From the IMG/VR virus record IMGVR_UViG_3300009184_000029, positions 124,001 through 188,000 of that record: a DNA stretch of 64,000 nucleotides; one strand, given 5' to 3'. Numbering within the stretch: position 1 is the first letter of the stretch; each line of letters starts with the position of its first letter. Positions 14,441 to 43,219 of the stretch are shown here, one piece after another. Below the pieces are notes generated by a model that worked only from the letters and a program-made list of their open reading frames with translations, was not told the origin of the DNA and ran no database searches. The position numbers and the translations under genes are program-made.

Positions 14441-14445
14441 CAACA

Positions 14446-18075: not shown

Positions 18076-21000
18076 ATGGCAGAATCTAATAAAGTTTTCG
18101 TATCTCCAGGTGTATATACATCGGAAAGAGACTTGTCGTTTGTAGCTCAAAGTGTGGGGGTTACAACATTAGGTATTGTTGGTGAAACCTTAAAAGGGCC
18201 AGCATTTGAACCTATCTTTATTACAAGTTATGATGAGTTTTCAACCTATTTTGGTGGAACTTCAGCTGAAAAATTTGTAAATACACAAATTCCTAAATAT
18301 GAATCGGCGTACATTGCTAAGTCATACTTACAACAATCAAATCAATTATTTGTAACAAGAGTACTTGGTTTATCAGGGTATGATGCAGGTCCTTCATGGT
18401 CAATTAAAACAATCGCAAATCCTGATGTTACAACTATGGGATTAAACGGTACCGGAACGTCATATTCCGTAGCGTTCTCAGGAAACACTGGTGGAACATA
18501 TAATTATGTTAGTTCATTCCCATCAATAATTGAATCTAATAGAACTGCAACATATACAACATTTGCTGGAGGTTCATCTACAATCCAAGAATCATTAAAT
18601 ACTTTAATTACAACTTTTCTTGGTAATGTATCGACATCAGCGAACACAATTTATTATTTTGGACCTGTTTCAGGCTATAGTGCATTAGCATCATCGTATA
18701 CTGCGGACACTAATGTATTTGGTGTGGATACCGAATCAACTGCAACAATAAATTACGCTTCAGGTACAAATGACTCTTGGTTCTACTCTAACTGGTCCCC
18801 AACAACAGGAAATGCTTACACGGGATATTCTTTCTATAGTGTGATTACAAATACAAGCGGAGCGACTGCAGGAACTTACACAGGTACTGTGTCAGGAAGA
18901 TACTATCAATTTAGTGGTACTGCTTATGTAGACTATAACAATTTAGTAATTGCAACTTTACGTTCAAGAGGTATTTCAACATACAGTAGTACTAATGGAC
19001 CAACTTATCAAGTTTCAGGAGTGAATAACGTATCATTAATTACGACAGGTTCTTATTCAGGTGTAAGTGAAAATCCATATCTAACATTTAAAGTTAGTGG
19101 TTCAACAATTGAAAATACAAACTTTGAATTTGAAACATCTTTAGATGATAATGATACAAGTTATATGAATAAAGTTTTTGGAAGAACTAACTTCGCAAAA
19201 GACAGAACTACAGTTCCATTATTTGTTGAGGAAATTTATCCAACTATGTTGTCATACGGTTACAATCAAGGATATATCAGAGGTATCAGTTCTAATTTAG
19301 TTAGTTTAAACAGTGCTAGAAGTGCGACTTCAACATCAATTGGTAACTATACTGAAAGATATCAAACCCCAGTTACTCCTTATTTAGTTTCTGAATTAAG
19401 AGGTAATAAAGTTTATCAGTTATTTAGATTTGTTTCAATATCTGACGGTAATGATGCTAATACAGAAATTAAAGTATCTGTTGCTAACATGTCATTTAAT
19501 AACTTAACATTTGATGTTATAGTTAGAGATTTCTATGACACAGATGCTAACCCTGTAGTATTAGAGAAATTTACGAACTGTACAATGGACCCTAATGAAA
19601 ATAGTTTTGTTGGTAAGAAAATTGGTTCTTCTGACGGGGAGTACGCAATAAATTCTAAATTTATAATGGTTGAGGTTAATCCTGAAGCACCAACAACGGC
19701 AATTCCTTGTGGTTTTGAAGGTTATAATACAAGACAATACTCAACTTACCCAACAAACTTACCTCCATTCCCAATTTTAAAAACTAAATACGATTTTCCT
19801 GGTGAAATTATCAGTAATCCTCCATTTGGTTCTACTTCAGGGGATGATGCTGTTACATCAGCAGGTGATAATGTAAGAAGAACTTATTTAGGTTTCTCTA
19901 CTAAAGTTGGTGTTGATACTGATTTCTTACAATATAAAGGTAAGATAAATCCTTCAAATCTTTGTACGGCAACTGAATACGACCAATGGGGTGTAAGAAC
20001 TCAAGGTTTCCACATGGATAGTGGAGCAACTGTAATTACTATCGGAACTTCATTTACAACTTCAGGTGACCCAGCGTTTGATTGTGGTGTGGCATCATTC
20101 CAATCAGAACCAACAACTGAATCAAATCCTTACTACAGATTATATTCTCGTAAGTTCACACTTGTATTCCAAGGAGGTTTTGATGGATGGGACATCTATA
20201 GAGAAAATAGAACAAACCAAGATAGATTTGCATTGGGTGGTTCAGGATTTTTGGCAGGAGCTTGTTCTTCTACAAGATACCCAACCGCATCAGGTAAACT
20301 ATTTAAATCAATAACTGTAGGTGACAACTCAACTGATTGGGCTAATACTGACTACTACGCATACTTATTGGGTATTAGTACTTTCTCAAACCCTGAAGCG
20401 GTTAACATTAACTTGTTTGTTACACCTGGCGTTGATTATACTAATAATAGTGGTGTTGTGGAATACGCGATTGATATGGTTGAGAATGACAGAGCGGATT
20501 CATTGTATATTACGACAACTCCTGACTTTAATTTATATCAACCATCAACAGATATCAGTAATTTAATTTACCCACAAGAAGCGGTTGATAACTTGGAAAC
20601 TACAGGATTAGATTCTAACTATACCGCAACTTACTACCCTTGGGTATTAACAAGAGATACTGTAAATAACACTCAAATTTATTTACCAGCAACCGCTGAG
20701 GTAACAAGAAACTTAGCATTAACCGACAACATTGCGTTCCCTTGGTTCGCAGCCGCGGGTTATACAAGAGGTATTGTAAATGCAGTTAAAGCTCGTAAAA
20801 AGTTAACTCAAGAAGATAGAGATACTCTTTATAAAGGAAGAATTAACCCAATCGCTACTTTCAATGATGTTGGAACTGTAATTTGGGGTAACAAAACTTT
20901 ACAAGTAAGAGAATCAGCTTTAGATAGAATTAACGTAAGAAGATTGTTATTACAAGCACGTAAATTGATTTCAGCGGTAGCTGTAAGGTTATTGTTTGAA

Positions 21001-21234
21001 CAAAATGACGATATTGTTAGACAACAATTCTTGGATTCAGTTAACCCAATCTTAGATGCAATCAGAAGAGACAGAGGTCTTTATGATTTCAGAGTTGTTG
21101 TTCAAAACACTCCTGAAGATTTGGATAGAAACCAAATGGTAGGTAAGATTTATATCAAACCAACTAAGGCTCTTGAATTCATAGATATTGAGTTCTTAAT
21201 CACTCCATCAGGAGCGTCTTTTGAAAATATCTAA
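18076..21234 (+). CDS. Contractile tail sheath protein
   Basis: VSPGVYTSERD N-terminus, GETLKGPAFEP, PWFAAAGYTRG, RINPI, WGNKT, DRINVRRL, IKPTKALEFIDIEF. Confidence 0.95.
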   Translation: MAESNKVFVSPGVYTSERDLSFVAQSVGVTTLGIVGETLKGPAFEPIFITSYDEFSTYFGGTSAEKFVNTQIPKYESAYIAKSYLQQSNQLFVTRVLGLSGYDAGPSWSIKTIANPDVTTMGLNGTGTSYSVAFSGNTGGTYNYVSSFPSIIESNRTATYTTFAGGSSTIQESLNTLITTFLGNVSTSANTIYYFGPVSGYSALASSYTADTNVFGVDTESTATINYASGTNDSWFYSNWSPTTGNAYTGYSFYSVITNTSGATAGTYTGTVSGRYYQFSGTAYVDYNNLVIATLRSRGISTYSSTNGPTYQVSGVNNVSLITTGSYSGVSENPYLTFKVSGSTIENTNFEFETSLDDNDTSYMNKVFGRTNFAKDRTTVPLFVEEIYPTMLSYGYNQGYIRGISSNLVSLNSARSATSTSIGNYTERYQTPVTPYLVSELRGNKVYQLFRFVSISDGNDANTEIKVSVANMSFNNLTFDVIVRDFYDTDANPVVLEKFTNCTMDPNENSFVGKKIGSSDGEYAINSKFIMVEVNPEAPTTAIPCGFEGYNTRQYSTYPTNLPPFPILKTKYDFPGEIISNPPFGSTSGDDAVTSAGDNVRRTYLGFSTKVGVDTDFLQYKGKINPSNLCTATEYDQWGVRTQGFHMDSGATVITIGTSFTTSGDPAFDCGVASFQSEPTTESNPYYRLYSRKFTLVFQGGFDGWDIYRENRTNQDRFALGGSGFLAGACSSTRYPTASGKLFKSITVGDNSTDWANTDYYAYLLGISTFSNPEAVNINLFVTPGVDYTNNSGVVEYAIDMVENDRADSLYITTTPDFNLYQPSTDISNLIYPQEAVDNLETTGLDSNYTATYYPWVLTRDTVNNTQIYLPATAEVTRNLALTDNIAFPWFAAAGYTRGIVNAVKARKKLTQEDRDTLYKGRINPIATFNDVGTVIWGNKTLQVRESALDRINVRRLLLQARKLISAVAVRLLFEQNDDIVRQQFLDSVNPILDAIRRDRGLYDFRVVVQNTPEDLDRNQMVGKIYIKPTKALEFIDIEFLITPSGASFENI

Positions 21235-22234: not shown

Positions 22235-22723
22235 ATGGCAGATTTGCTAATGAAAATGCCCGTACCTTACGAGCCAAAAAGACAGAATAGATTTATTCTA
22301 AGATTTCCGTCTTCGTTGGGTATTAACGAATGGTTCGTACAAGCAGCGTCAAGACCAACTATAACAATCGGTTCAACTCCGATTCCGTTTTTGAATACTG
22401 AAACATATGTTGCAGGAAGATTTAAGTGGAGTACTATACAAGTTACATTTATTGACCCAATCGGTCCTTCGGCGTCTCAAGCTTTGATGGAATGGGTTAG
22501 ATTACACGCTGAGTCTGTTACAGGTCGTATGGGATACGCCGCAGGTTATAAGAAAAATGTTGATTTAGAAATGTTAGACCCAACAGGAGTTGTGATTGAA
22601 AAGTGGATTTTGGAAGGTTGTTTTATAACAAACGCTGGTTTCGGGTCACTTGGTTACGCTAATGAAGGTTTGGTTAATATTCAGGTAACACTACAACCTG
22701 ATAGATGTATTTTAGTTTACTAA
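22235..22723 (+). CDS. Tail tube protein (T4 gp19-like)
   Basis: YEPKRQNRF, AGRFKWSTIQVTFIDP, EWVRL, GYKKNV, LDPTGVVIEKWILEG; 162 aa downstream of sheath. Confidence 0.9.
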   Translation: MADLLMKMPVPYEPKRQNRFILRFPSSLGINEWFVQAASRPTITIGSTPIPFLNTETYVAGRFKWSTIQVTFIDPIGPSASQALMEWVRLHAESVTGRMGYAAGYKKNVDLEMLDPTGVVIEKWILEGCFITNAGFGSLGYANEGLVNIQVTLQPDRCILVY

Positions 22724-22817: not shown

Positions 22818-23570
22818 ATGGACGCGAAACAAGCTGGACAAATGGATTTTAATTTACCACATGATGTGGTAGAGTTACCTTCAAGAGGGATTTTTTATAA
22901 ATCTAAGAAAAAATCTTTAAAGGTTGGTTATTTAACGGCAAATGATGAAAATATTTTGGCTAACGCTCGTAAAAACGGGGGACAAAATATTATCCAATCA
23001 TTATTAAGAAGTAAAATATATGAAACCGAAATTAAACCTGAAGAATTATTATCAGGTGATGTTGAGGCAATCCTTATCTTTTTAAGAAATACTTCATTTG
23101 GACCTGAATATACTTTTGAGGTTGCTGATGACGATGGTAAGAAGTTTGAAACAACTGTAACTATCGATGAATTAAATATAAGAAAACCCGAAGTGAATCC
23201 AAATGAAGACGGGACTTTTACAACGACATTACCAAAGTCAGGTTATTCTGTAAAATTAAGACCACTTACTTTTGGTGAAAATGTCGATTTAGAAAAAATG
23301 GAAGATTCATATCCGACTGGACTTGTCGCTCCGACAATAACATGGAGATTAAATAAAATGATTGTTGAGGTTAATGGAGATAGTAATATGGAGACAATTT
23401 CTTCATTTATTAATAATTTACCTATTATGGACTCTAAATATATTAGAAGTTTCATTGACATAAACGAACCAAAGTTAGACTTAGCAAGAGAAGTATTTAC
23501 CCCGTCAGGAAAAAGGAAGAAAGTATTAGTTTCCTTTGGGGTTGACTTTTTTCGGCCTTTCTTCAGCTAG
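22818..23570 (+). CDS. Tail/baseplate-hub assembly chaperone (T4 gp26-like)
   Basis: VELPSRG, LTANDENIL, GDVEAILIFLR...GPEY, C-terminal DFFRP; located between tube and tape measure. Confidence 0.75.
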   Translation: MDAKQAGQMDFNLPHDVVELPSRGIFYKSKKKSLKVGYLTANDENILANARKNGGQNIIQSLLRSKIYETEIKPEELLSGDVEAILIFLRNTSFGPEYTFEVADDDGKKFETTVTIDELNIRKPEVNPNEDGTFTTTLPKSGYSVKLRPLTFGENVDLEKMEDSYPTGLVAPTITWRLNKMIVEVNGDSNMETISSFINNLPIMDSKYIRSFIDINEPKLDLAREVFTPSGKRKKVLVSFGVDFFRPFFS

Positions 23571-23734: not shown

Positions 23735-25729
23735 ATGGCGAAAACTGAAGGTGACGGTGAAGGTGAAAAAAGTACAAATTTCATCAAAAATTTAGGAGAC
23801 GAGATAAAAAAATCGTTATCTTTTGATGCGGTCAATGAACAAGCCAAAACTTTATACAAAAATGTTAATGAGGTAGTTAAAGAAATGGGTATTGGTCGTG
23901 AAAACGCCTATGCTCTTACTGTTGAATTAGGTGATGCGGAATCTAAAATAACCGCTTTAGGAGGTTCTTTAAAGGATGCTGTCGATATCCAAAAGGAATT
24001 TATGACTACAACAAATCAACAGTCTATATTGTCGGCACAAATTCTTGAGGATGTATATGAAACATCTAAAGCTTTAGGAACAACATCAAGTAGTTTTATT
24101 AAATCATTTGAAGTTGTTGGAGGGTCAATTGAAAAATTCACCGAAAACATGAGTCAAGTAAGTCAGATTGCTGCGTCGTTTGGTGTAAATGCTAAAGCGG
24201 TATCAAGTGATGTGTTATCTAATATTGATTTGTTAGACAATTATGATTTTTCTAATGGTGTTGAAGGATTAGCTAATATGGCTTCAACCATGAGTCAGTT
24301 AAAATATTCTTTAGACGATGTTGAAAGGGTTACAAACGCTTTATTAGACCCAAGTAAGGCTTTGAATTTCTCTCAAAAAATGGCGAGTTTAGGTAGTCAG
24401 AATAGAGAATTGACGGATAATTTAAATGTCCAAATGATGGCATTAGAAAATCCTGAAAAGTTAATGAAAAATATTACTGAGGAATTTGCTAAATTTTATC
24501 AGAAACAAGAGGACGGAACATATAAGTTATCAAAACAGGGTCTTTTATTAATGGGAGATTTCTCACAAGCGGCAGGTATTAGTAGTGATAAATTAAGAGT
24601 GGCTTCAAAAGAAATGTTAGAAATTAAAGACAAGATGGGTCAAATAACTTTACCAACATTAGAATCTGACGAAGCGACTAAGAATTATATCTCTCAGATG
24701 TCTAAAATAGGTAAAGACGGTAAGGCGGTTATCACTTTTGAGGCAAAAGATGAACGAGGAATGATTGAAAAGGTAACTAAAACATTAGATGAGTTGACTA
24801 CTAGTGACGCTGAAATGTTGAAGATACAAATGGAGGAACAGGCTAAAAAAACATCTGAAGAAAAAATTGTCGAACAAATGACTCCTGAGGAAAGAGAAAA
24901 GGCGTTAAGAGATTCAATAAGTGCGGCAATTAAAAATGGATTTGCAACAACGAAAGTTGTACAAGGTGCAATTGAATTAAAGAAAGATGCTATTGAATTA
25001 ATGTTAAAACCGTTATCTGCGGCAATTGATAGTAGTTCAATTAGAAAGGCAGGTGATACAGTCGCAACAACTATTGCTGATTTAAGTGGTAGTATTAAAA
25101 AATTTGTTAAAGGTCAATCTGATTTATCAGGGGCGTTTGATGGGGTTAAAAGTAGTGCTACAGTATTGGAAGGGATAATGAGTGGACAATTAAAGAAGGG
25201 ACTTGAAACTTTTGATGAATCATTATCTAAAATAAATATAGATGACTATAACCAATTTGGTTTGGTTATAAAAGAAATAACAGGAAAGAAAACAGGTGAT
25301 TTAACTGATTTAAGGTCAGTTATTAAGGAAGAGTTGTTTACAATGAATACCAAACAGAAAGACGCGATTATTTCTGACGGTATGGTCATACCTTATGATG
25401 AGGGTGATGTTGCTGCGGTCTTTAAAGAAAGAGGTTCTGAAATGAGTATTGACGATGTTAAAAAAACCGTAGATAATACAAAAACACCGGCTCAAGATTT
25501 TGTAAATCAGTATGTTGGTACCGTAAATAAAACTGAAAATATTGATAAAAAAATTATTGAAGGAGACGCTTCAATAACTATAAATTTCAAGGCTGACAAT
25601 AATAAAGATATCGAATACCAATTAATGGAAAAATTAAAAGATTTATCATTTGTCCAAGAAGTCAAAAATAAATTAAATGGTTCATTAATGGAAAAAATAT
25701 CTGGCGGACTTTTGGAAAATAAAAAATAA
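23735..25729 (+). CDS. Putative tape measure protein
   Basis: 664 aa, helical A/E/K/L/M-rich, canonical position after chaperone. Confidence 0.6.
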   Translation: MAKTEGDGEGEKSTNFIKNLGDEIKKSLSFDAVNEQAKTLYKNVNEVVKEMGIGRENAYALTVELGDAESKITALGGSLKDAVDIQKEFMTTTNQQSILSAQILEDVYETSKALGTTSSSFIKSFEVVGGSIEKFTENMSQVSQIAASFGVNAKAVSSDVLSNIDLLDNYDFSNGVEGLANMASTMSQLKYSLDDVERVTNALLDPSKALNFSQKMASLGSQNRELTDNLNVQMMALENPEKLMKNITEEFAKFYQKQEDGTYKLSKQGLLLMGDFSQAAGISSDKLRVASKEMLEIKDKMGQITLPTLESDEATKNYISQMSKIGKDGKAVITFEAKDERGMIEKVTKTLDELTTSDAEMLKIQMEEQAKKTSEEKIVEQMTPEEREKALRDSISAAIKNGFATTKVVQGAIELKKDAIELMLKPLSAAIDSSSIRKAGDTVATTIADLSGSIKKFVKGQSDLSGAFDGVKSSATVLEGIMSGQLKKGLETFDESLSKINIDDYNQFGLVIKEITGKKTGDLTDLRSVIKEELFTMNTKQKDAIISDGMVIPYDEGDVAAVFKERGSEMSIDDVKKTVDNTKTPAQDFVNQYVGTVNKTENIDKKIIEGDASITINFKADNNKDIEYQLMEKLKDLSFVQEVKNKLNGSLMEKISGGLLENKK

Positions 25730-25770: not shown

Positions 25771-28700
25771 ATGTCAGAAAACTTACTTACTTTACAGGGT
25801 TCAGAACAATTCAGAAAGAGTCTAATTACAAGAAATTTAGCACCTTATAATGTACAAGGTGTTTATACTCCACCTAATTTTCCACAAAATTTTGAAACTG
25901 TATTAAGTGATAGTAGTGTTGTTGATGCTCCTGAAATAGAAGAAAGTGTTGGTGGAGGAGGGAACATATCCCAAGTTTCATTAGCAACAAGATATAATAC
26001 ATATGGACCTGGAGGTGAGAGAAATAGAGTAGACGCTGCTGACCAAATATCTTTACCAAGTCAAAATCAGGGTGTTGAAACTAATGGACAAGTTTCTTTT
26101 ATTGCAAATAACCAACCTTACCAACTTGCTGAGACTCAATTAGATTTAATTAATGAATTTTTCATTGATGCTGCATTTATTGAAAATAAATACGGACCCG
26201 AAGGAGGGTTTAAAAACATGTATTTTGTCACTTCAATACAATCTAATGACAATATATATGCAAATTATTGGGGACCACCTTCATTCGTTCCTTCATTCTA
26301 TTCTGTATACCAAATCTTAACATCTGACAACCCACAAGGGAGTGTTGGTTCATTAAGTCAAGATTCTTATCTTGCTAAAATAGGGGCACAGTATTTAAAA
26401 AATGCGTTCCAAGAAAGAATTGCTCAACAAATTGAAAATGATACTATAGGTCGAGTTAATTTAGATGCGTTACAGGACCCATTTACTGCTATTGAAGTTT
26501 TAAGAGGTGCTGAACCATTAGTTGAAAGAAACTATAGAATTACCGTACCTAACGGACCTATCGCTCGAAGTATTGATATTTTAACACAGGTTACAGGAAC
26601 TTATATTCCCGCTTCACCGATACCCGGAGATTATTTTGGTTTTGTACAAAGAAGCGCCGGTCCTCTTAGACAAATTATTGGTTCGGTTTCAAAACTATTT
26701 AATTTTACACCTGCCGACTCAGGTTCTGAATTATTTTTTAAAAATACTGGTTCAGGTCAAATAACATTTTTATTTAGAAATATTGATAGTAATCTATATA
26801 AACCAAATTACGATAGAAGTTTATTAGGTACTGTAATAGGTTTATTGAATGACGCTACAGATAGAAATGTTAGTATTGGTACTTTTTACGTTGGTTCACC
26901 TAACAGTAATCCATCTTTAATTGATTCACCTCTTAAAGATTCTCCTGATAATGCCTTTGGTCAAAATACTCAATCGATGGTTTACGGACCTGATAAGATG
27001 AGTAAACTTTATGAAGGGTCTCAAAATAATTTTAATTTTGGACTTGCAGGTAAAAGTACCATTGATGGAGGAGGAATTGACGGAGGGTTTACTTGGACTT
27101 CCCCAAAGTATAAAGATAATGCTGGATTCACAGTCGGACCTGGAGGTAAGAATGTAGCTCAAGACCCTGATTATAAATCAATCAGTTCTCAATTAACATC
27201 TAATGAGTCGACTAATTATACATTTAAGACAAATTCTTTATTAGATAATACACAAAGAATAATTGACTCAACACCATCAGATTCGAACAGGTATTCTCAT
27301 GCGGGTAACGCAATTTCAAATATATCTAAAGTTTTTAACGATGGATATAAAGAAATTACAAAGGGTTCTAAAGTAAAAAAATATGTAAATCAAAATGGTG
27401 CTGAAGTAGGCACTGAGTATTGTAGATTATTTACAAAAGACACTCCTTACTTGACTTATAATGATTTACAAAAAACTGTCGCTAATACTTCAGGTTCAGA
27501 ATTAAATGGTAATATTAGAAAATTTAGTTATTCCGTTTTAGACTCTACTTATAATTTGAATATTGCACCTTTTAAAAATCCGGGTTCAACAAACATTCTT
27601 AATAACAAAGTTAAAAAATACATGTTTTCATTAGAAAATTTGGCTTGGAGAACATCAAAGAAACCTGGTTTTACTTATAATGATTTACCTGTATGTGAAA
27701 GAGGGCCAAATGGAGGTAGAATTATGTGGTTTCCACCATATAATTTAACATTTAGTGAAACTGTTACACCATCTTTTGAAAGTCAGGATTTTATAGGAAG
27801 ACCTGAACCTATTTACACTTACAAAAATACAAAAAGGGGAGGTTCAATAGGATTTAAAATGATTGTTGACCATCCATCAGTATTAAATTTAATAGTAAAT
27901 AAAGTTTTAGCAAAAGAATCTAATCGACAAATTGTTAATGAAATTGTTGATTCATTTTTTTCAGGGTGTAAAAAATATGACATTTATGATTTAGCGGCTA
28001 AATTTAATACATTACCGTTATCTGATTTAATTGCTGTTCAGGAAATCATAAATGAACAGAATATACCTATAGAACAAATACAAGATGCTTTAAATGAGAT
28101 TTCATCACCTGGAAATAATGGTACTGACAATCCCGATGCGGCTTCAAACCCGTCTCCTGAATTGGGTGATTTTACAACATATGAAAACATTGGATTTTAT
28201 TTTGACAATGATATACCTGGTCCGTCAACAGTAGAGGAAGTTAGTGGTTCTTTTGAGGAGTACTATAACACTTACATTACAAAGTTAAGTACGTACCAAT
28301 CTAATTCAACTACTGAAGAAAAACCAAAAATGCAACCATTTTTTGATGATGTGGTTAAGTGGAATTTTGACCAAGTTAAGGAAATGATAAAACAATTATA
28401 TCCTATATTAAGTCAACAACAAGCAACAGTTACATTAATTATGGATGGCAGTGCTTCTCCAGTTGCGTCTGCGGCTTATAATAAGAAGATTGCTAAAAGA
28501 AGATTAAGTTCGGTTAAAAATTTCTTTAAAACGTATGAATTAGATTTAGGTAATGAAGTAATGTCTTTAAAGGATTTTGTTGATAAAACTTTATTGTTTA
28601 CAACAACTGCTTTAGGTGAAAATACAAATGCAACCCCAAAGGCAAGTTTTGGAAATGTGGATACATTCTCATGTTCTGACACACCTGGAGACCCAAATTA

Positions 28701-30678
28701 TCAAGCGATTGGTGATTCAAAAAACAAAACGTATTCAACAAGAGCAATGGCTTGTAGGGCGGTGAGATTTAATAAAGTAATAATTGAACCAACCCCTCCA
28801 CCTGCACCTGCACCTCCATTAGTTGACCCAATACAAAAACAAGAACAGGGATATCAAAAAGTAATTAATAAAGATATTTTCTCTAAAGTTAAAGAAGGTA
28901 TTAGTAAAAAAATACTTAGAAGTTTATTATCTGAGTGTGATTATTTTGAGGTAGTTAAAGGAAGTAATCCTATGTTTTTTGATTCTATAAAGGATAAGAT
29001 TAAATATTTCCATCCGGGTTTTCACTCTATGACACCTGAAGGTTTAAATTCAAGATTAGTATTCTTGAATCAATGTGCAAGACCTGGAGATACTATACCT
29101 ACAATAAAACCTGATGGAACTACTGCTAATGGTGATGCGTCAAATACTAACTTTGGGGTACCACCTGTTTTAATATTAAGAATTGGTGATTTCTTTAATT
29201 GTAAAATTATACCTGGTACAATTACACTAAAATATGAAAACTTAGATATAAATCCTGAAGGTATTGGAGTTCAACCTATGATTTGTGACGTATCACTTTC
29301 ATTTGATATTATCGGAGGTATGGGTCTTAAAGAACCTGTTGACAAATTACAAAACGCATTGTCATTTAGTTACTACGCTAATACTGAAATGTATGATGAA
29401 AGGGCGACTCCTACTGAAGATACTACTGCAATAGACCAAGCGGTATTTGAAGCAATTTTAAATCAAACTCCTGTTGTTGGTGTTAATAGTGTTGGTGATG
29501 TAAATCAAATTAATGGTGGTAATCCATTTGGTAGTGTAACTAAATTTAATTTAAGTGGAAGTTCTGAAACTGGAGATATTAATTACCAAAAACAATTTGA
29601 TGATTTATTAACTTCTACTAAAGGATACTTTGATGGAATTTTAAATTCTTTAGAACAAATAATAAAAGATTACGGATGGGCGACTGAACAAATGTTTGTT
29701 AAAACTGACAATCGAAGATTTAAAACTGGTAATTATAAAAATTTATCAGGAACTAAATTGGCTTCAAAAATGTTTGGGAAGAATAATGAATTAGATAATG
29801 AAATTAATGATATTTTTAATAAATTGACAGATTCTATTGATAATAATGATAACCCAATAATAAAGGCAATTGACAATACTTTAGGACTACCTAATAGTGT
29901 TAAACGAGATGTTAAGGGTAACTATGTTAATTATGTTAACACATTAAAATCAGAATATTCTCAATATCTTTTTGAAAAAGAAAAACAATTAACAGAATTA
30001 CAACAAAATTATATACAAACTTTAAGAAAATTTGATTTAGTTGTTACAGGAAATGATGGTAAAATATTAACTAATGGTCAGGCTAAAATATTAGGGTTAA
30101 GTGGAACTACTGACATCCACTCAACAAGTACAGGGCCGACAACATTAGAAGAGATTGTTACTGACTATACTCAAGTAGGCACGGATATGAAAGAGTATAT
30201 TGAATTATTAGAAACTCATTATTTAATAACTAATACATATAGTTCTAGTAAACCTTCATATACACAGGTTTCAACGTACAGTATAACCGACGATGAAAGT
30301 TATCAATATCAAATAATGAATAAAATATTATCAGACGGAACTACTAAGAATAATTTTGTTAACAATTTGGTTAAAAACAATGAATCAAATAGTTTATTAA
30401 AAATAACAATTGAGCAAAGTATCGAAAATTTCTTAACAATCTTTAATGTTGTTAATAGTGATTCATTAAATCAAGTTGAAGATTTTAAAAATTCAGAAAG
30501 TTACACTAACAAATATAAAGATTATAAAACAATTCCATCAGGTAAAACAAGGAAATTTACATATATATCTAACAGTACAACCTCAACTCAAGTATTCCAA
30601 ACCAATACAAAAAACATATATTCTAAAGTTAATATATCGAATGATGAAACTTTTAATGATAAAATACAACTAAATTAA
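25771..30678 (+). CDS. Large baseplate/tube-initiator-like protein with OmpA-like insert
   Basis: FSETVTPSFESQDFIGRPEPIYTY and PPVLILRIGD...PMICDVSLSF resemble tube-initiator motifs; FYFDND...GSAS..YNKKIAKRRLSSV resembles OmpA_C. Confidence 0.55.
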   Translation: MSENLLTLQGSEQFRKSLITRNLAPYNVQGVYTPPNFPQNFETVLSDSSVVDAPEIEESVGGGGNISQVSLATRYNTYGPGGERNRVDAADQISLPSQNQGVETNGQVSFIANNQPYQLAETQLDLINEFFIDAAFIENKYGPEGGFKNMYFVTSIQSNDNIYANYWGPPSFVPSFYSVYQILTSDNPQGSVGSLSQDSYLAKIGAQYLKNAFQERIAQQIENDTIGRVNLDALQDPFTAIEVLRGAEPLVERNYRITVPNGPIARSIDILTQVTGTYIPASPIPGDYFGFVQRSAGPLRQIIGSVSKLFNFTPADSGSELFFKNTGSGQITFLFRNIDSNLYKPNYDRSLLGTVIGLLNDATDRNVSIGTFYVGSPNSNPSLIDSPLKDSPDNAFGQNTQSMVYGPDKMSKLYEGSQNNFNFGLAGKSTIDGGGIDGGFTWTSPKYKDNAGFTVGPGGKNVAQDPDYKSISSQLTSNESTNYTFKTNSLLDNTQRIIDSTPSDSNRYSHAGNAISNISKVFNDGYKEITKGSKVKKYVNQNGAEVGTEYCRLFTKDTPYLTYNDLQKTVANTSGSELNGNIRKFSYSVLDSTYNLNIAPFKNPGSTNILNNKVKKYMFSLENLAWRTSKKPGFTYNDLPVCERGPNGGRIMWFPPYNLTFSETVTPSFESQDFIGRPEPIYTYKNTKRGGSIGFKMIVDHPSVLNLIVNKVLAKESNRQIVNEIVDSFFSGCKKYDIYDLAAKFNTLPLSDLIAVQEIINEQNIPIEQIQDALNEISSPGNNGTDNPDAASNPSPELGDFTTYENIGFYFDNDIPGPSTVEEVSGSFEEYYNTYITKLSTYQSNSTTEEKPKMQPFFDDVVKWNFDQVKEMIKQLYPILSQQQATVTLIMDGSASPVASAAYNKKIAKRRLSSVKNFFKTYELDLGNEVMSLKDFVDKTLLFTTTALGENTNATPKASFGNVDTFSCSDTPGDPNYQAIGDSKNKTYSTRAMACRAVRFNKVIIEPTPPPAPAPPLVDPIQKQEQGYQKVINKDIFSKVKEGISKKILRSLLSECDYFEVVKGSNPMFFDSIKDKIKYFHPGFHSMTPEGLNSRLVFLNQCARPGDTIPTIKPDGTTANGDASNTNFGVPPVLILRIGDFFNCKIIPGTITLKYENLDINPEGIGVQPMICDVSLSFDIIGGMGLKEPVDKLQNALSFSYYANTEMYDERATPTEDTTAIDQAVFEAILNQTPVVGVNSVGDVNQINGGNPFGSVTKFNLSGSSETGDINYQKQFDDLLTSTKGYFDGILNSLEQIIKDYGWATEQMFVKTDNRRFKTGNYKNLSGTKLASKMFGKNNELDNEINDIFNKLTDSIDNNDNPIIKAIDNTLGLPNSVKRDVKGNYVNYVNTLKSEYSQYLFEKEKQLTELQQNYIQTLRKFDLVVTGNDGKILTNGQAKILGLSGTTDIHSTSTGPTTLEEIVTDYTQVGTDMKEYIELLETHYLITNTYSSSKPSYTQVSTYSITDDESYQYQIMNKILSDGTTKNNFVNNLVKNNESNSLLKITIEQSIENFLTIFNVVNSDSLNQVEDFKNSESYTNKYKDYKTIPSGKTRKFTYISNSTTSTQVFQTNTKNIYSKVNISNDETFNDKIQLN

Positions 30679-30679: not shown

Positions 30680-31006
30680 ATGGCTAACGAATATTTTAAT
30701 AGATATCAGCAATTTACAATAAATGGACAACAAAAAACTGTTCCATTTGTGACGTTACCAACAAAAAGTACTGATATTAGACATATATACAAAGTCGGTA
30801 GCTCAAGGTTGGACAAGATATCACAACAATATTATGGTACACCATTTTTTGGATGGTTAATTATGATGGGTAATCCATCTTTTGGTGGTTTAGAGTGGAA
30901 TATACCTGATGGTACCGCAATACGAATTCCATTTCCTTTAGTGTCAAGTTTATTAGATTATAATAGTCAATTAGACAAATATTTTTTATATTATGGCAAA
31001 GACTGA
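30680..31006 (+). CDS. LysM/tail-X-like baseplate protein (gp53-like)
   Basis: RLDKISQQYYGTPFFGWLIMMGNP...IPDGTAIRIP. Confidence 0.75.
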   Translation: MANEYFNRYQQFTINGQQKTVPFVTLPTKSTDIRHIYKVGSSRLDKISQQYYGTPFFGWLIMMGNPSFGGLEWNIPDGTAIRIPFPLVSSLLDYNSQLDKYFLYYGKD

Positions 31007-34000
31007 AAACATTTTAATAGAACTTGATTATGACAATATGATTGTCATTGACCCAAACAAAGTTCTAAATAATGAAGGGTTTCCCGAGGAAAGAAATGTA
31101 CCTCAGGAAAACTTAGTTATGTATGCCAATTTAACTTGTACTGTAATACCTAGAACAAAACTTGCGATAGGGACTTCTAATAATACTGTAATTGAGACAA
31201 TTAACGTCTCAAGTTTCAATATGTTAAATCAAACAGGACAAGATGGGTTTAACACAAAATGGACTGATGAATTAACTGGACTTGACTCAATACAGGGAAG
31301 AGGAGTAAACCAAATAAGTTTACAACCAAAGGTTAATCCGCAAAATTCTAACGATTACTTTTTATCTCAAACACTTTTAAGTGAAGGTAAACCTGGCACT
31401 ATTGATACAGGATTGTTGGGTATGAAGTCAATAAATATTAAAACAAGTACTAACTATATCTCAACAATATCAATCCAATTTGTTGATATTAAAGGAAGAG
31501 CTTTATTTGGTGCTGGAGATAATTCAATATATTCTGCATTTTTTAATCAACCAAGACCTCAATTTGAGTTAACTATTAAAGGTTATTATGGTAAGGCAAT
31601 TAAGTATAAGTTACAACTTATGGAGTTTGAATTTAGTACAGACCAAAGTGGTAATTTTTCAATTGTTACAACATTTGAATCTTACAAGTTTGGTATTTTA
31701 GGTTCTCTTGGTTATAGTATGATTGAGGCGGTTTCAGGAATGTATGAGAAAAAATACACAGTATTAAATACTGACTCCACACCTATTACCGGAGCTGCTC
31801 CAAATACCGATGGTTCAATTAGTACTTTAAAAACTAATACTGAACAAAGTGTTTATAGAGGGTATGAATTAATTGGTGAATTTTTTGATTTATATAGAAA
31901 AAAAGGTTTGGTTGACCCTGATATGCCAACATTAACTATTTGGGATTTAAAATACAAACTTGAAAATTTTACGACACAAGTCGCTACATCTCTTGTACAG
32001 GAATCAATGGCTCCATTAAATGAGATAACAAAATATTCAGAATTATTAAATAGATATTTGACAGAAGTTTCAAGTTCGTCACCTGAAAGTTGGTTCAAAA
32101 AATATTGTGATGATAAAACATATTATGTTTTAAATTTATCGCGATTGGAGCGTCTTACGTTAGAAATATTGACTGATTCTATAACAATACCATCTAAGAT
32201 ATACAAATTTAAACCTGAAATTGACACTATTGATAAACAAAAAAAGGCAATATCAGAATTAGAAGGAATTATCACAAAATATAACAAAGATTTAAATGCT
32301 AATCCTGTATTGGGTAGTATGGGTAAATTTGTGATTTCAAAAAAAGAAGTTTCGTCTAGTGTGAAAATTAATATTAGTTTAAATACTATACTTACAAATA
32401 CAGTAACCGCTGAAGACATAAATTTTGCAGAAACTTACAAACAGAGATTCTCAACAGAACCTACCGCAGCTCAAGTAGAACAACTTGAATTGGAATTTAT
32501 TATGGAACAAGTTAGGACTATGCAAATTACTAATGAACAAGAAAATAATGTAAAACCAAAACCTATTAATTTTTTTATGTTTGGGCCATCGCAAGGTTTT
32601 GATTATGAAATCAAAACTATAAAAACCAAGGTTGATGACCAAAAACAAAAAATAGAAACTGCATTACAAAATTCATTAGAAAATAGTTTTTTAGATAAAA
32701 ATATTGGATTTGGGTTTAAACCTTCAGTTAGAAATATTATATCAGTTATTATGGCATCTACTGAGGCATTTTTGGCTTTAATGGATGAATGTGAAAATAA
32801 ATCTTGGTCGGTTAGAAATAATGAAATTAGAAAAAGGTCAGTTTTAGGTTTAAATAGTGTTGAAAAAAACGCCGGAAACATTCAGACAACTGACCCAATC
32901 TATCCTTGGCCATTATACACTGTCGCAAAGACAAACAATGGGAAAACTGAATTAGAAGTTACATACCCTGGGGATTCAAGTGTGATACAACAAACACAGG
33001 CGTTTAATAAAGATATATGGCCTGAAGTTGAATTTGTTGAGGAATATTTTAAAGGGTACTCACAACGTATACCGTATCCTGCAAATCCTTTGGTTGGACT
33101 AAATGACTTGGTTGTTACTAAAATTTCAGGTAACATGTTAGACGCACCATTTACAAATAGATTTTATTCTCAAAAATCTGAAAACAAATTTTTCTATGAA
33201 ATTTGGGAAAGAATTTTAAGTATTGGTATGTTTAGCGGTTTTGATTATAAAGACGAAACGTCTAGACTATTACTACCCCCATTGTCGCAGATAGAATCAA
33301 CTGTTATCGTCCAAAGTTTATCTAATGAAAATCCATATTTAATTAACAAATTAAAGAATTTTGATTTAAATTCTGAAAATTATGAAAATTATTTAAAACA
33401 AATTTCTAATAGAGGATTAGGTGAAAGTTGGAACAAATATATAAGAAATGTATTTGTAACAGATTATTTAGAGACCGAATCTTTAAACCCAACTTTAATT
33501 TTACCTGGGACTATCTCACCGTCTTTCACATTACCAAAGAGTGATGAATTTGATGGGTACGTTAAAAGTACTTCAAATAGATTTCCATATTTAGGGATTT
33601 ATCCATTTAATAACGATTTATGGGTGACATTAAATGTTACAAATTCAAGTCTATTCCCAACAGTTTCCGAAATATATAATACTGAAAAAAATCTTTTCTA
33701 TGATAAGGATTATTTTTTAATTAAATCAAATGGAAATTATGCGTTTAGTAACTTTTGTTATGTTAATTCAACTAACCCTGCGGTTGTTGGAAATACATTT
33801 TCAGACTTAACTAATTTTTATTTAAATCGTAACAACGCTGATAAATTTTTAGCAACTGAAGGTAAGATATATTTGAACAACTCGAATAATAAATTAGGGT
33901 ATGAACAGACGACCTCAATTTTAAACACTCCTTATTTTGTAAACGCTATTTTAGATGGTGCTCAAAAACAAAAAAGTGGGTCAACTTATCCGTATATCAA

Positions 34001-37000
34001 TGCAGCTTACCTTTTTATTAATTCACTGCCAGTTGCTACTTTAAGGGAAACATTTAAAAAATTAGTTTCAGTCGAAAATAATAGTTATGAGGATGAAAGT
34101 TTAATTGGTCCTACGTTAAAGAAATTTTCTGGGTTACATACTTTACCTTATACTTTTATTTTAAAATATGGTTCAATATGGCACAGGTATAAAAAATATA
34201 TAGAAACCGGAGTTGATATTCTAATTGATAATTCTGGAGGGCAGATTACAACTTTTGATAATTTTAAATATGCTGAAAATTACGACCCATTAACTTTAAA
34301 TGTTAATAAAGAATATTTTATAGGTAATGAAGATGATGCAAATTATTTAAGTTTAAAATTAAGAAATTTACAACCGACTACTGGACCAACACCAATAAAT
34401 GTGTTAACAATGAATATTGGGTTTTATCCTAAGTTAATTGATAATTTTCATTATTTTTTAAATGACTCTAATTTCTTTGACAATTATACTGCTAGTAATG
34501 TTTTATCTAAAACACAAAGTGGTGATTTAATTTGTATTAAATCTGCCTCAGGGTCTGTTGTTGGTAAATCAAATTATTTAGAAGGAGGAGGAAACACACA
34601 ATTAAACATTTTTGCATGGTCTGTAGTTACTAAAACAGATGACGGTAAATATTGTATCATGCCATCATTTGGAGGTAATATTAAACAATACTATTATGAG
34701 ATGTTTGGTGATAGTCCACAGGCATCCATTGACCCCGATTTGAATCAACCAACAATCAACGGTTCAGTTAGATTATTTTGGAACTCTCCAAACTACGGAT
34801 ATTTTGACCACAATGCGATGAATTTACCGACGCATAAACAGTATATGAAAAAGATATATCCTGAAATTTCAAATCAGGATGCGTTTGGGTTAATTGATTA
34901 CTCTTCAATTGAAGAAATATTTTCAGTATTTACTAAGAATGATTTAGATATTTTTGAAACTGAGTTTTTAAAATTCTCATTACCTACTTTATCGTTAGAT
35001 AATGTGGTAAGATTAAACAACTTCCAAAGTTTGATGAGGTCATTTTTTGTTGTAAATCCTGGTGCGGTTAATGGGTTTAAAAATGATGATAACGGAATCA
35101 AGTCATTTGCTAACGCTCAATTCCCAACAGTATTGAGTTATATTAAAAATTTCTTGGAAAAAACAATTGTTTTAAAACTTGGTAATTGTCATTCATTTAA
35201 TAGAGATTTATTTAACACTTTTAATTTAAACAGAGCTGATGATATAGGTATTATAAAATATAATAGTTATTTTGCAAATACCCCAAATATACTACCTTAT
35301 TATAATCAAACAACACTTTACCAAACAATTGCAACTAATAGTCCCGAAGCATGGAAAGCGTTTCAATTATATATAGGATTTAGTAGTATTTCTGAATTAG
35401 ATTATGAATCTTATAACACTTCTTTCTTATTCGATTTCTTTGTACAGTTTGATGTTGAATTTACTGAAGAAAATGTAATTAAATTTGCACCACTTGTTAA
35501 ATTATATGCAACTAGAAAAATAGAAAATTCATCATTAATACCTAATGATTCGAATCAACATGTTAATTTATTTAAAGATTATATTACAACATTTTTCTCT
35601 AATTCATTGGATTTAAGTAAACAAATTTTAAATGATACTTTAATTAGTGTTAGAAAAGGATTACCGAATGTTAATGTTGGTTCATTATCTGTACTTGAGA
35701 CTGTGTATCAATCTAATCCTCAAAAAGTTGAAATGTATGATAGATTTAAAAATTTAAATGATGGATGGATATCTGGTAGTGATTATTTAAATCCTGCTCA
35801 TACATTGTTTGAGGATATTGTATTTTTCGATAGAGCAGGTAGAAATATTGGGGCTGAAATATATTGTGATGTTAATCACGTTAAAAATATTTTATCGGGG
35901 GCTTTAAAGGAAAATCCTGTGTTTAGTATTATACAAGAAATATTAAACCATGAAAATTTTTCTGTAACTCAAAACATGGCGTTTTGTAATTATTACGGAG
36001 TACAAAGACCCGGAGATAATATTAACCCAAAATTTGTTGGGACTTCAGATGTGGCAAACACTTTATTTGGTACTTTTACTACAATTGATACACAAGATAC
36101 TACCGCTAAGATAATATGTGAGTTCAATGACATGGACTCCAAATACATCGATACCCCAAATGACAACTATAAATTTTCAAACGATTCTTTTGATTTAATT
36201 AAAGTTGAAAATAATCCTTTAAGAGAAGATATTACAAATAAAGCTGATTTTGCACTTTCAAGTAAAGTTGTTGGATTTGTTGTAGACTTTTCGAATCAAA
36301 ATCAGAATGTGTTCAAAAATATGAACATAAGCTCAAGAACTGGAGGTAAAAATATTGTAACAGTTCAGAATCAATTGGACGTTATTGAAGCGTCATCAGG
36401 TAAGAAGAGTGCGTCACAAAGTGTCTCTTTATATAACTTCTACAAGGGACAATCATATGATGTCTCAGTCAGTGCTATGGGTAATGCTTTATTACAACCA
36501 AAAATGTTTTTTTATTTAAAGAATGTCCCATTATTTAGAGGAACGTATCAAATTAATGAGGTAAGTCATTCTATAACTACAACATCTTTTGGGACCCAAT
36601 TTACAGGTAGAAGAGTTCCTGTGTACTCAATTAAAAAAATTACGGATTATCTACAAAGTTTAAAAATACAAGTTTTAGAAAAAATATTAAACGAAACTAA
36701 GAATGCTCAGGAAAAATCACAAGGTGCTGCTACAGTATATAGTGAAAGGGATAATAAGATTATTAACTTTAAAGGTGGTAAACGACCAACACAAAACCAA
36801 GCTTGTAAACCTAATGAAAAATACAATACTTTCCAAACAGATACTCCGAAACAAACAACAACTTCAGTTAACGCTTTAATTAAAAAAATTGAACAAGTCT
36901 TCCCAAGACTAACCGATACGGCTTTAGCTGATTATCAAAAGAAAGTTACCGAAAACCAAAATCTTTGGTTTATAATATTCTCTATTGTATACGTTGCTAA

Positions 37001-37409
37001 TTTACAAGAAGGTAAACTGAGTTCTTTTAATAATAACTTTGGTAATATACCATTAGATACTGAATACGGAGGTGATTTAATGAAGTTACCCAAAAAGAAA
37101 TTTATATGTTTAGAAAGTTTGGGAGGTGCGTCAACGGCTTATATGTCATTTGATACGATAGATAAAAATATTGAATTTATAGGTAAAAAATTACAATCAA
37201 GGTCAAACGACTTTACTTCTTTAGAAGTTAATGCAGTTTTAATTAAACAAATGACAACAATTTGGACTAACTATTGGCCTAATTTCGCAAATGACATGTA
37301 CACCCAACTCAAACAAACTGACCCATATTCATTTAATGAATTAGAATTAAAAGTAAAAAAATCATTGAATTTGGCTAAAAGTAATTTTACACCATTACCT
37401 ACATTTTAA
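30993..37409 (+). CDS. Giant baseplate hub protein (gp27/gpD-like)
   Basis: 2138 aa; C-terminal MGNALLQP...GTYQINEVSHSI...FGTQFTG hub-like motif; follows LysM gene. Confidence 0.55.
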   Translation: MAKTENILIELDYDNMIVIDPNKVLNNEGFPEERNVPQENLVMYANLTCTVIPRTKLAIGTSNNTVIETINVSSFNMLNQTGQDGFNTKWTDELTGLDSIQGRGVNQISLQPKVNPQNSNDYFLSQTLLSEGKPGTIDTGLLGMKSINIKTSTNYISTISIQFVDIKGRALFGAGDNSIYSAFFNQPRPQFELTIKGYYGKAIKYKLQLMEFEFSTDQSGNFSIVTTFESYKFGILGSLGYSMIEAVSGMYEKKYTVLNTDSTPITGAAPNTDGSISTLKTNTEQSVYRGYELIGEFFDLYRKKGLVDPDMPTLTIWDLKYKLENFTTQVATSLVQESMAPLNEITKYSELLNRYLTEVSSSSPESWFKKYCDDKTYYVLNLSRLERLTLEILTDSITIPSKIYKFKPEIDTIDKQKKAISELEGIITKYNKDLNANPVLGSMGKFVISKKEVSSSVKINISLNTILTNTVTAEDINFAETYKQRFSTEPTAAQVEQLELEFIMEQVRTMQITNEQENNVKPKPINFFMFGPSQGFDYEIKTIKTKVDDQKQKIETALQNSLENSFLDKNIGFGFKPSVRNIISVIMASTEAFLALMDECENKSWSVRNNEIRKRSVLGLNSVEKNAGNIQTTDPIYPWPLYTVAKTNNGKTELEVTYPGDSSVIQQTQAFNKDIWPEVEFVEEYFKGYSQRIPYPANPLVGLNDLVVTKISGNMLDAPFTNRFYSQKSENKFFYEIWERILSIGMFSGFDYKDETSRLLLPPLSQIESTVIVQSLSNENPYLINKLKNFDLNSENYENYLKQISNRGLGESWNKYIRNVFVTDYLETESLNPTLILPGTISPSFTLPKSDEFDGYVKSTSNRFPYLGIYPFNNDLWVTLNVTNSSLFPTVSEIYNTEKNLFYDKDYFLIKSNGNYAFSNFCYVNSTNPAVVGNTFSDLTNFYLNRNNADKFLATEGKIYLNNSNNKLGYEQTTSILNTPYFVNAILDGAQKQKSGSTYPYINAAYLFINSLPVATLRETFKKLVSVENNSYEDESLIGPTLKKFSGLHTLPYTFILKYGSIWHRYKKYIETGVDILIDNSGGQITTFDNFKYAENYDPLTLNVNKEYFIGNEDDANYLSLKLRNLQPTTGPTPINVLTMNIGFYPKLIDNFHYFLNDSNFFDNYTASNVLSKTQSGDLICIKSASGSVVGKSNYLEGGGNTQLNIFAWSVVTKTDDGKYCIMPSFGGNIKQYYYEMFGDSPQASIDPDLNQPTINGSVRLFWNSPNYGYFDHNAMNLPTHKQYMKKIYPEISNQDAFGLIDYSSIEEIFSVFTKNDLDIFETEFLKFSLPTLSLDNVVRLNNFQSLMRSFFVVNPGAVNGFKNDDNGIKSFANAQFPTVLSYIKNFLEKTIVLKLGNCHSFNRDLFNTFNLNRADDIGIIKYNSYFANTPNILPYYNQTTLYQTIATNSPEAWKAFQLYIGFSSISELDYESYNTSFLFDFFVQFDVEFTEENVIKFAPLVKLYATRKIENSSLIPNDSNQHVNLFKDYITTFFSNSLDLSKQILNDTLISVRKGLPNVNVGSLSVLETVYQSNPQKVEMYDRFKNLNDGWISGSDYLNPAHTLFEDIVFFDRAGRNIGAEIYCDVNHVKNILSGALKENPVFSIIQEILNHENFSVTQNMAFCNYYGVQRPGDNINPKFVGTSDVANTLFGTFTTIDTQDTTAKIICEFNDMDSKYIDTPNDNYKFSNDSFDLIKVENNPLREDITNKADFALSSKVVGFVVDFSNQNQNVFKNMNISSRTGGKNIVTVQNQLDVIEASSGKKSASQSVSLYNFYKGQSYDVSVSAMGNALLQPKMFFYLKNVPLFRGTYQINEVSHSITTTSFGTQFTGRRVPVYSIKKITDYLQSLKIQVLEKILNETKNAQEKSQGAATVYSERDNKIINFKGGKRPTQNQACKPNEKYNTFQTDTPKQTTTSVNALIKKIEQVFPRLTDTALADYQKKVTENQNLWFIIFSIVYVANLQEGKLSSFNNNFGNIPLDTEYGGDLMKLPKKKFICLESLGGASTAYMSFDTIDKNIEFIGKKLQSRSNDFTSLEVNAVLIKQMTTIWTNYWPNFANDMYTQLKQTDPYSFNELELKVKKSLNLAKSNFTPLPTF

Positions 37410-37458: not shown

Positions 37459-37683
37459 ATGGACATTAAAACTGCAATTAATAATTATCTTGGTAAACAA
37501 GCAAGAATTACTGAAAAGGATAATGGTAATGGATTTAAAGAAGTTTGTGATTTAGATACTGGAGATTGTTATACAGTAAGAATGAAAGATGGTCTTATTG
37601 AAAGAGTTGACAACACATATCAAACAAACAAAAAAATAAAAGTAGAAACTAATAACGGATTTAAACAACTTCTAAATGGCTAA
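37459..37683 (+). CDS. Small hypothetical protein
   Basis: 74 aa, CDLDTGDC motif, overlaps next start. Confidence 0.6.
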   Translation: MDIKTAINNYLGKQARITEKDNGNGFKEVCDLDTGDCYTVRMKDGLIERVDNTYQTNKKIKVETNNGFKQLLNG

Positions 37684-38335: not shown

Positions 38336-38341
38336 TTAGTA

Positions 38342-38373
38342 TTTGACAAAAACGGCTGACACACTTACATTTG
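38342..38373 (+). promoter_or_regulatory. Host sigma-A promoter of SSB/replication operon
   Basis: TTTG(38342-45)-N20-TACATTTG(38366-73) matches Bacteroidota TTTG/TAnnTTTG; also TTGACA-N17-TACATT. Confidence 0.7.
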
Positions 38374-38400
38374 TTTATTAACTATTAATTTATATATATC

Positions 38401-39243: not shown

Positions 39244-39248
39244 TTTAT

Positions 39249-39294
39249 ATGGATGGACACTTGAATTGACAAAGTGTCCATCCATTCTTATTTT
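39249..39294 (+). promoter_or_regulatory. Perfect 14-bp inverted repeat with TTGACA in its loop; promoter and/or terminator before recA-like gene
   Basis: ATGGATGGACACTT-GAATTGACA-AAGTGTCCATCCAT; TTGACA(39266-71)-N17-TATTTT(39289-94). Confidence 0.65.
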
Positions 39295-39324
39295 TATACA
39301 AACAATTTAAACGAATAGACATTT

Positions 39325-40323: not shown

Positions 40324-40332
40324 TTATTGTTC

Positions 40333-41328: not shown

Positions 41329-41339
41329 AAAAAACAATT

Positions 41340-41795: not shown

Positions 41796-41820
41796 TATTT
41801 AATTAAAAAAGGGATTTATT

Positions 41821-43191: not shown

Positions 43192-43219
43192 TTATTAAAA
43201 CAGAAACAGAAAAAAAATT

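Follow-up and report, generated by a model that had tools for sequence, protein, structure and literature searches.

A predicted OmpA-like domain inserted into a giant tube-initiator-like baseplate protein of an uncultured jumbo myovirus

We analyzed a 64,000-nucleotide stretch of viral DNA, given as one strand and covering bases 124001-188000 of the IMG/VR record IMGVR_UViG_3300009184_000029 (hereafter, the window), in which an open reading frame (ORF) of 1635 amino acids (aa), termed P0001, occupies positions 25771..30678 of the plus strand and encodes a giant tube-initiator-like baseplate protein. P0001 lies in a plus-strand run of tail genes that encode, in this order, the sheath, the tube, a protein of the T4_baseplate family, a tape-measure-like protein, P0001, a gp53-like protein, and a product of 2138 aa. 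An initial annotation, made from the sequence alone, had noticed an OmpA-like peptidoglycan-binding domain at 28186-28780, i.e., at residues 806-1003 of P0001, and had suggested that a component of the tube tip brings it into the periplasm, where it serves as an anchor on the cell wall while injection proceeds. Our data indicate that residues 800-1005 almost certainly adopt an OmpA-like fold, that the domain is a true insertion in its host protein, and that five of six positions contacting the peptidoglycan stem peptide in the Bacteroidota protein PorE are conserved in the family, the exception being the canonical Asp, which is replaced by Ser.

P0001 can be read along its length as a series of conserved and variable regions, all on the plus strand. 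Its N-terminal region (residues 1-575, 27495 being its last base and 25771 its first) is well conserved (70% mean column identity, alignment A6) and has no recognized fold; the N-terminal ~580 residues gave no Pfam, PHROG or PDB relative, including when a profile was compared with the PDB. The putative N-terminal half of a tail-tube-type beta-sandwich (residues ~615-700, 27613..27870) follows, and then a helix-rich segment (residues ~704-777, 27880..28101), in which helices are predicted and which is conserved in alignment A4, and a linker rich in Pro, Asn, and Ser (residues ~778-799, 28102..28167), read from the sequence and variable in alignment A1. Next comes the OmpA_C-like domain itself (residues 800-1005, 28168..28785), enlarged by a helical excursion near its N-terminus and by an extension at its C-terminus in which two Cys residues are conserved. 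A downstream Pro-rich linker (residues ~1006-1035, 28786..28875), likewise read from the sequence and of varying length across the family, leads into a second segment of predicted helices (residues ~1036-1103, 28876..29079; alignment A5, 82% mean column identity) and the putative C-terminal half of the tail-tube-type fold (residues ~1130-1200, 29158..29370), for which three strands (1134-1138, 1142-1155, and 1170-1181) and a helix (1187-1200) are predicted. The C-terminal region (residues 1226-1635, 29446..30675) is variable (45% mean column identity, alignment A7) and of unrecognized fold, and a profile of these 410 residues found no relative in the PDB. This layout bears out the initial annotation in its outline: the Pro-rich linkers that it placed around the domain are present (~779-802, rich in Pro, Asn, and Ser, and ~1005-1025, rich in Pro), and the two halves that it placed at ~27720 and ~29160 coincide with predicted strands 650-654 and 1134-1138, which jointly align with tail-tube-fold chains.

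The P0001 family is large, with more than 3183 full-length homologues (clusters at 90% identity) sharing 42-47% identity, 1495 clusters at 50% identity sharing the C-flank, and at least 564 matching stretches in IMG/VR; the question of what the inserted domain does therefore concerns a common environmental phage group. Mean column identity is 42% in the OmpA-like domain versus 75% in the N-flank (A4) and 82% in the C-flank (A5). One clade of homologues (P0218-P0263, 2000-2850 aa) is up to 1200 residues longer than P0001, with inserts of 300-430 residues that keep the Tyr-Asn and Arg motif and carry extra segments after it.

The assignment of residues 800-1005 is supported by several lines of evidence. 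The peptide quoted in the initial annotation was recovered from a spot check of positions 28441-28515, and its OmpA_C/MotB-like pattern is far beyond chance. An alignment-fed AlphaFold2 model of residues 800-1005 reached a predicted local distance difference test (pLDDT) score of 92 and a predicted template modeling (pTM) score of 0.90 and displayed the characteristic alpha/beta fold of periplasmic OmpA-like domains, so that the structure prediction proposed as a check in the initial annotation returned the OmpA_C fold; the same part was again confident in a separate model of residues 615-1250. More specifically, a profile built from 28 homologous domains (alignment A2) retrieved OmpA-like, PorE, Pal, YfiB, and OprF chains from the PDB (best E = 4.8e-5); thirty rows reached E <= 1, and 28 of them were chains of the OmpA family. 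The Pfam family PF00691 matched 25 of the 28 domains (best E = 7e-6) when matches were counted at E <= 0.1, the curated cut-off of this family being 27.2 bits. The search with PF00691, which had likewise been proposed, gave matches at this threshold for most of the homologous domains and none for the window's own copy, and a search of the whole virus record with PF00691 found nothing; by phmmer, the window's copy reached a solved OmpA-like domain in the PDB at E = 0.016. Several homologues of P0001 already bear the JGI label "OmpA-like peptidoglycan-associated protein."

The domain is oversized (~206 residues) and bears both a long excursion of helices (model helices 29-82) and an extension at its C-terminus. 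Two Cys residues of this extension, Cys968 (28672-28674) and Cys995 (28753-28755), are present in 177-179 of 212 relatives, nearly all of the remainder being gaps. A disulfide may link this pair; in a protein whose assembly is cytoplasmic, such a bond would be unusual. In shape, the extended domain (residues 180-395 of the 615-1250 model; ~28150-28800) is nearest to PorE, which belongs to the type IX secretion system of Bacteroidota, and it also resembles Bacteroidota proteins that pair PD40, TPR, or DUF1573 with such a domain (template modeling [TM] score by target up to 0.60). Together with a G+C content of 31% and the similarity of the phage's sheath to that of a Flavobacterium phage (see below), the PorE-like shape hints at a Bacteroidota host, or at capture of the domain from a member of that group.

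To place the domain within its host protein, we mapped flank and domain profiles on those proteins that have both flanks among 270 (the first 120 homologues plus the best 150 of the 1495 clusters). Most of the mapped proteins show a gap of 220-430 residues between the flanks that matches the OmpA-like profile. Four natural relatives (P0144, P0246, P0247, and P0260), however, join the same flanks through a low-complexity linker of only 45-118 residues. The domain is thus a true insertion, as the initial annotation had claimed. The helix-rich segments at 704-777 and 1036-1103 are kept in the insert-less forms, and the OmpA-like domain is therefore nested within a helix-rich excursion of the putative tube fold. 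In a midpoint-rooted flank tree covering the best 150 of the 1495 clusters, the four insert-less relatives fall at three separate places beside insert-bearing clades, and this scatter suggests that they arose by secondary loss. The flanks remain more than 50% identical where the domain has been lost, and the surroundings of P0144 are arranged as in the window, with a gene of 107 aa and then a large one behind it. We also considered whether another domain takes its place in many relatives; this idea was dropped when a filter-free search matched nearly all such inserts to the same profile (E 1e-18 to 1e-3). A Pfam search of the host domains of the four insert-less relatives and of six divergent inserts gave nothing meaningful.

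We then compared the domain with PorE bound to a stem-peptide fragment, in which the side chains of Asp576, Asn584, and Arg591 form hydrogen bonds with the ligand and Phe541, Tyr583, and Ile587 pack against it; Arg591 makes a salt bridge to the diaminopimelate carboxylate, and Asp576 binds the diaminopimelate amine. Five of these positions were transferred to P0001 by HMMER alignment, whereas Phe541 was placed by eye on Phe811, by means of the shared F-x-F-D strand motif and the PorE numbering, as the printed alignments stop short of that strand. Conservation was measured over 212 family members and 198 columns. Arg911 (28501..28503), the counterpart of Arg591, is the most conserved column of the domain (Arg in 201/212, 95%), and Phe811 (28201..28203), which corresponds to the hydrophobic contact Phe541, is the third most conserved (Phe in 192/212). 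Likewise, Tyr903-Asn904 (28477..28482) match Tyr583-Asn584 (Tyr in 175/212, Asn in 187/212), and Ile907 matches Ile587 (Leu or Ile in 199/212, Leu in most relatives). At the canonical peptidoglycan-binding Asp position (Asp576), in contrast, P0001 has Ser896 (28456..28458; translation checked), and Ser is found there in 178/212 members (84%). The Arg, the Asn, and the aromatic and hydrophobic pocket residues typical of OmpA-like domains are therefore present, and the Asp of the G-H-T-D motif is not. All six contact positions fall within the top 13 of the 198 columns, for which median column conservation is 0.38. Such conservation, in a domain whose other columns vary widely, argues for the maintenance of a ligand pocket that has changed, in a way specific to this family, where the amine is bound. 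Counted by motif, Tyr-Asn and Arg occur together in 172 of the 212 members and Arg without the pair in 29, whereas 10 have no Arg. Natural variants are at hand in the inserts of P0172, P0178, P0183, P0190, P0191, P0209, and P0210 and in the absence of an insert in P0144, P0246, P0247, and P0260; such a series (pocket intact, Arg lost, domain lost) provides ready-made controls for function.

As to the host protein, the label of tube initiator derives from the structure model of the flanks and from gene order, not from sequence. An exhaustive structure search (VIA) of the 615-1250 model against PDB representatives gave two clean classes of matches, in which OmpA-like domains fall on model residues ~175-393 and tail-tube-fold chains span both flank halves. 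The best tube-fold matches are small tube or initiator chains covered nearly whole (e.g., 121/136 residues), and the class includes chain P of the lactococcal phage p2 baseplate, the 80alpha baseplate, and Hcp1. Similarly, contractile-injection-system tube proteins were matched in BFVD at probabilities of 0.99-1.0, with gp48-type tube caps weaker, and a language-model feature search (Atlas) pointed, as a lead only, to a T4_tail_cap cluster (score 0.86). A tail-tube or Hcp-type beta-sandwich is thus predicted for the flanks with moderate confidence, and the gene stands directly after the tape measure (itself assigned by position) in the hub part of the locus. We scored the conservation of gene order in 80 related viral contigs and found it kept in most of them. 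On these grounds, P0001 is probably the tube initiator of this phage.

The genes around P0001 are consistent with a contractile tail. The sheath gene (1052 aa, 18076..21234, +) matches Pfam Phage_sheath_1 and Phage_sheath_1C; the gp19-like tail tube gene (162 aa, 22235..22723, +) matches Phage_T4_gp19 at E = 7e-4, under the curated cut-off, and is conserved in 61 of the 80 loci; and the T4_baseplate-family gene (250 aa, 22818..23570, +) matches PF12322 at E = 5e-14. The upstream neighbor of P0001, a tape-measure-like gene of 664 aa (23735..25729, +; 71/80 loci), was assigned by position only and has no Pfam or PHROG family match. Its downstream neighbor encodes a small gp53-like baseplate protein (108 aa, 30680..31006, +; conserved in 75/80 loci and also beside the insert-less relative P0144) that matches phrog_7145, "baseplate wedge subunit" (E = 1.4e-6), and, weakly, Pfam Phage_gp53. 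The sheath, tube, and baseplate genes mark this uncultured myovirus as contractile-tailed, and the size of the source record, 222,829 bases at an estimated completeness of 76%, makes it a jumbo phage. Its closest cultured relatives by sheath are distant, namely, Microcystis phage Mel-JY01 (31% identity) and Flavobacterium phage immuto (37% over the C-terminal third), and a tblastn search of P0001 against 50,697 phage records gave no match.

The baseplate genes form two blocks, a hub side (22.8-37.4 kb) and a wedge side (46.7-55.6 kb), separated by plus-strand genes at 37676-46619 for gp32-like, RecA-like, 5'-3' exonuclease, and DnaB-like helicase proteins and for the small and large subunits of ribonucleotide reductase; the gp25-like and gp6-like wedge genes come after this replication-gene block. 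Two giant plus-strand ORFs, of 2138 aa (30993-37409) and 2175 aa (49056-55583), have zero Pfam matches and, from their position, may encode hub/spike-like and gp7-like baseplate proteins. A guess from a short motif that the 2138-aa ORF ends in a glucosaminidase-like wall hydrolase was discarded, as Pfam was empty for its last 330 residues and for the whole protein. Elsewhere in the window, a phage Fe/Mn superoxide dismutase (13730-14446, -; Pfam Sod_Fe_C E = 9e-38, Sod_Fe_N E = 1e-20) sits in a short minus-strand block beside an SNF2-family helicase (14454-16196, -).

From these features, a mechanism can be proposed in which P0001 would form a ring with the baseplate hub on one side and the first ring of the tail tube on the other. 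An excursion of ~430 residues would split its beta-sandwich of tail-tube type, the excursion comprising a conserved helix-rich module with the OmpA_C-like domain nested between flexible Pro-rich linkers, and before infection this excursion would occupy the space between hub and wedges. Upon sheath contraction, the initiator ring would move with the tube tip across the outer membrane and enter the periplasm, where the OmpA-like domains on their tethers (six in number, should the ring be a hexamer like that of Mu) would bind peptidoglycan stem peptides noncovalently. Binding would involve Arg911, Asn904, Tyr903, Phe811, and Leu/Ile907, with Ser896 in place of the usual Asp, and would hold the tube tip steady on the sacculus while the tape measure and the DNA exit. 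The number of subunits in the ring, its place in the virion, its passage into the periplasm, and the binding of the domains to peptidoglycan are inferred from T4 and Mu, the T4 part from the general biology of that phage. A complex prediction for two copies of the host domain of an insert-less relative scored 0.00, the fold itself being uncertain, and speaks neither for nor against such a ring. Anchoring to the cell wall at the tube tip is plausible, and to the mechanism taken as a whole, including the putative wall binding, we tentatively give a little less than an even chance.

Several observations weigh against this mechanism, beginning with the identity of the host protein. The flanks were modeled at low confidence (pLDDT 40-78 within residues 615-1250), and neither by sequence nor by profile did P0001 resemble known tube or initiator families (PF06841 gp19, PF11091 gp48, and T4 gp54); Pfam and PHROG searches with 28 homologues and with the four insert-less relatives did not return such a family either. 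Strongly conserved as they are, the flanks matched no Pfam or PHROG entry, and their profiles (A4 for the N-flank, A5 for the C-flank) yielded chance-level rows only in the PDB. Comparison of the flanks by hhalign gave probabilities of <=2.3% against three families of the phage itself (tube, 274-aa, and T4_baseplate) and, even with a 226-sequence profile, against T4 gp27, gp28, gp29, gp48, gp51, and gp54. Thus, of the "tube-initiator-like" host protein in the initial annotation, the fold model and the gene order stand, and a resemblance in sequence to known tube or initiator families was not found. Further points concern the domain. The window's own copy has no Pfam or PHROG match, whether searched alone or within P0001; Asp is absent from the six commonest residues tallied at the Ser896 column over the 212 members; and ~5% of the relatives lack Arg911 (some have Trp), while others lack the Tyr-Asn pair. 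Because some relatives have lost these residues and at least four the whole domain, the OmpA-like domain is dispensable. In addition, subunits of 1635 residues may make the ring too bulky to cross the outer membrane, and where other tube initiators carry LysM modules, these are taken as structural hub-wedge fillers and not as wall binders.

The last precedent leads to the main rival explanation, a real possibility although a doubtful one, according to which the OmpA-like domain is a protein-protein adaptor between hub and wedges that aids baseplate assembly or triggering and never meets peptidoglycan. Besides the structural use of peptidoglycan-binding-type folds in tube initiators, this explanation would account for the family-wide lack of the canonical Asp, for the embedding of the domain in a helix-rich module resembling the wedge-contacting domain of Mu, and for the family-specific additions and two conserved Cys. 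The conservation pattern is harder to reconcile with it, as the remaining ligand-contact residues are the top-conserved columns of a variable domain, which would be unexpected if only a protein-contact surface mattered. Moreover, the domain hangs on flexible, length-variable Pro-rich linkers, and it can disappear from proteins while their flanks keep more than 50% identity, which speaks against its being structurally essential.

A different ligand is a less probable explanation, and we regard it as unlikely: here the pocket works but is tuned by the Asp-to-Ser change to a noncanonical target, such as a stem peptide that is amidated or of Lys/Orn type, some other polymer of the envelope, or a host OmpA/Pal-binding partner, and serves host recognition or specificity rather than generic anchoring. 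The fixation of Ser in place of Asp, alongside the retention of Arg, Asn, Tyr, and Phe, fits such a role, as do the closeness in shape to PorE-type and to Bacteroidota PD40- and TPR-linked domains and the far greater variability of the domain relative to its flanks; Ser can still hydrogen-bond an amine, however, so the canonical ligand may yet be bound. A more far-reaching version of wall anchoring, which strikes us as rather unlikely, would make the domain a nonenzymatic peptidoglycan clamp on the tail-tube tip, perhaps captured from a Bacteroidota PorE-type protein, in which the Asp-to-Ser change tunes binding to the stem-peptide chemistry of the host and thereby adds a second, internal specificity checkpoint. 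Finally, it is quite improbable that P0001 is another central baseplate or tail-tip component (hub-like, distal-tail-like, or ejected) containing one tube-like beta-sandwich, in which case the placement of the OmpA-like domain at the tube base would be wrong: although the tube fold is common to hub, Dit, and Hcp proteins, some of them among the matches (p2 chain P, 80alpha, Hcp1), and although P0001 is four to five times longer than T4 gp48 (364 aa) and gp54 (320 aa), matches neither in sequence, has 575 N-terminal and 410 C-terminal residues without a recognized fold, and has low flank pLDDT, the order of tape measure, P0001, and small gp53-like gene fits the initiator slot, small tube and initiator chains are covered almost fully by the best matches, and the Atlas lead is to T4_tail_cap.

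In the literature and structure libraries searched, an OmpA-type module in the tube-initiator slot was not found; among predicted viral structures, the matches were the P0001 family and, weakly, a few standalone phage "OmpA-like domain" proteins (e.g., of Cellulophaga phage phi17:2). Since automatic annotation had already labeled homologues as OmpA-like, what is new is the architecture and its implication rather than the domain call. If wall binding holds true, a new step would be added to the crossing of the Gram-negative envelope by contractile tails, namely, gripping peptidoglycan in addition to cutting it.

Compared with OmpA_C domains of PF00691 (PorE, 6TOP; Acinetobacter baumannii OmpA, 3TD3-5; Pal; TagL from type VI secretion systems [T6SS]; and MotB), the P0001 domain has the same core signature of Tyr-Asn, Leu-Ser, and Arg-Arg followed by Ser-Val, and its family retains the contact positions occupied by Arg, Asn, Tyr, Phe, and Leu/Ile. 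It differs in the replacement of the G-H-T-D Asp by Ser (G-S-A-S-A), in its size (~206 residues versus ~110-150), in lying under Pfam detection, and in belonging to a virion protein rather than an envelope protein. T4 gp48 (tube cap) and gp54 (tube initiator) occupy the same position after the tape measure (T4 order 29-48-54), and weak fold and feature leads point to gp48-type proteins, whereas the hhalign probability for both is within the <=2.3% given above; neither is known to carry an OmpA-like domain.

The closest known arrangement is the LysM-bearing tube initiator, seen in recent structures of baseplates. Gp43 of phage Mu is a hexameric tube initiator whose gene follows that of the tape measure, with one domain that is tube-like and another that is rich in helices and bears a LysM module, and the LysM modules of the initiators of Mu (gp43), Milano, cyanophage A-1(L), and R2 pyocin have been ascribed a structural role in the baseplate. 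With these initiators (Mu gp43, Milano gp25, A-1(L), R2 pyocin, and Afp7/Pvc7-type), P0001 shares the slot right after the tape measure, a gp53-like partner gene nearby, and the combination of a predicted tube-like domain, a helix-rich part, and a peptidoglycan-binding-type module. However, the module is OmpA-like, no LysM being matched in P0001 or its 28 homologues; the extra parts are inserted within the putative tube fold, not appended to it; and P0001, at 1635 aa versus 446 for the matched Mu baseplate chain, has no detectable sequence similarity to them.

A possible functional parallel is offered by TagL/TssL of the T6SS, in which an OmpA-like domain tethers a contractile machine to peptidoglycan. 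TagL anchors, through the membrane complex, in the envelope of the producing cell itself, whereas the P0001 domain, riding on the putative tube-side initiator of the virion, would meet the wall of the target cell; if so, it would mirror, on the side of the attacker, the wall anchoring achieved by TagL.

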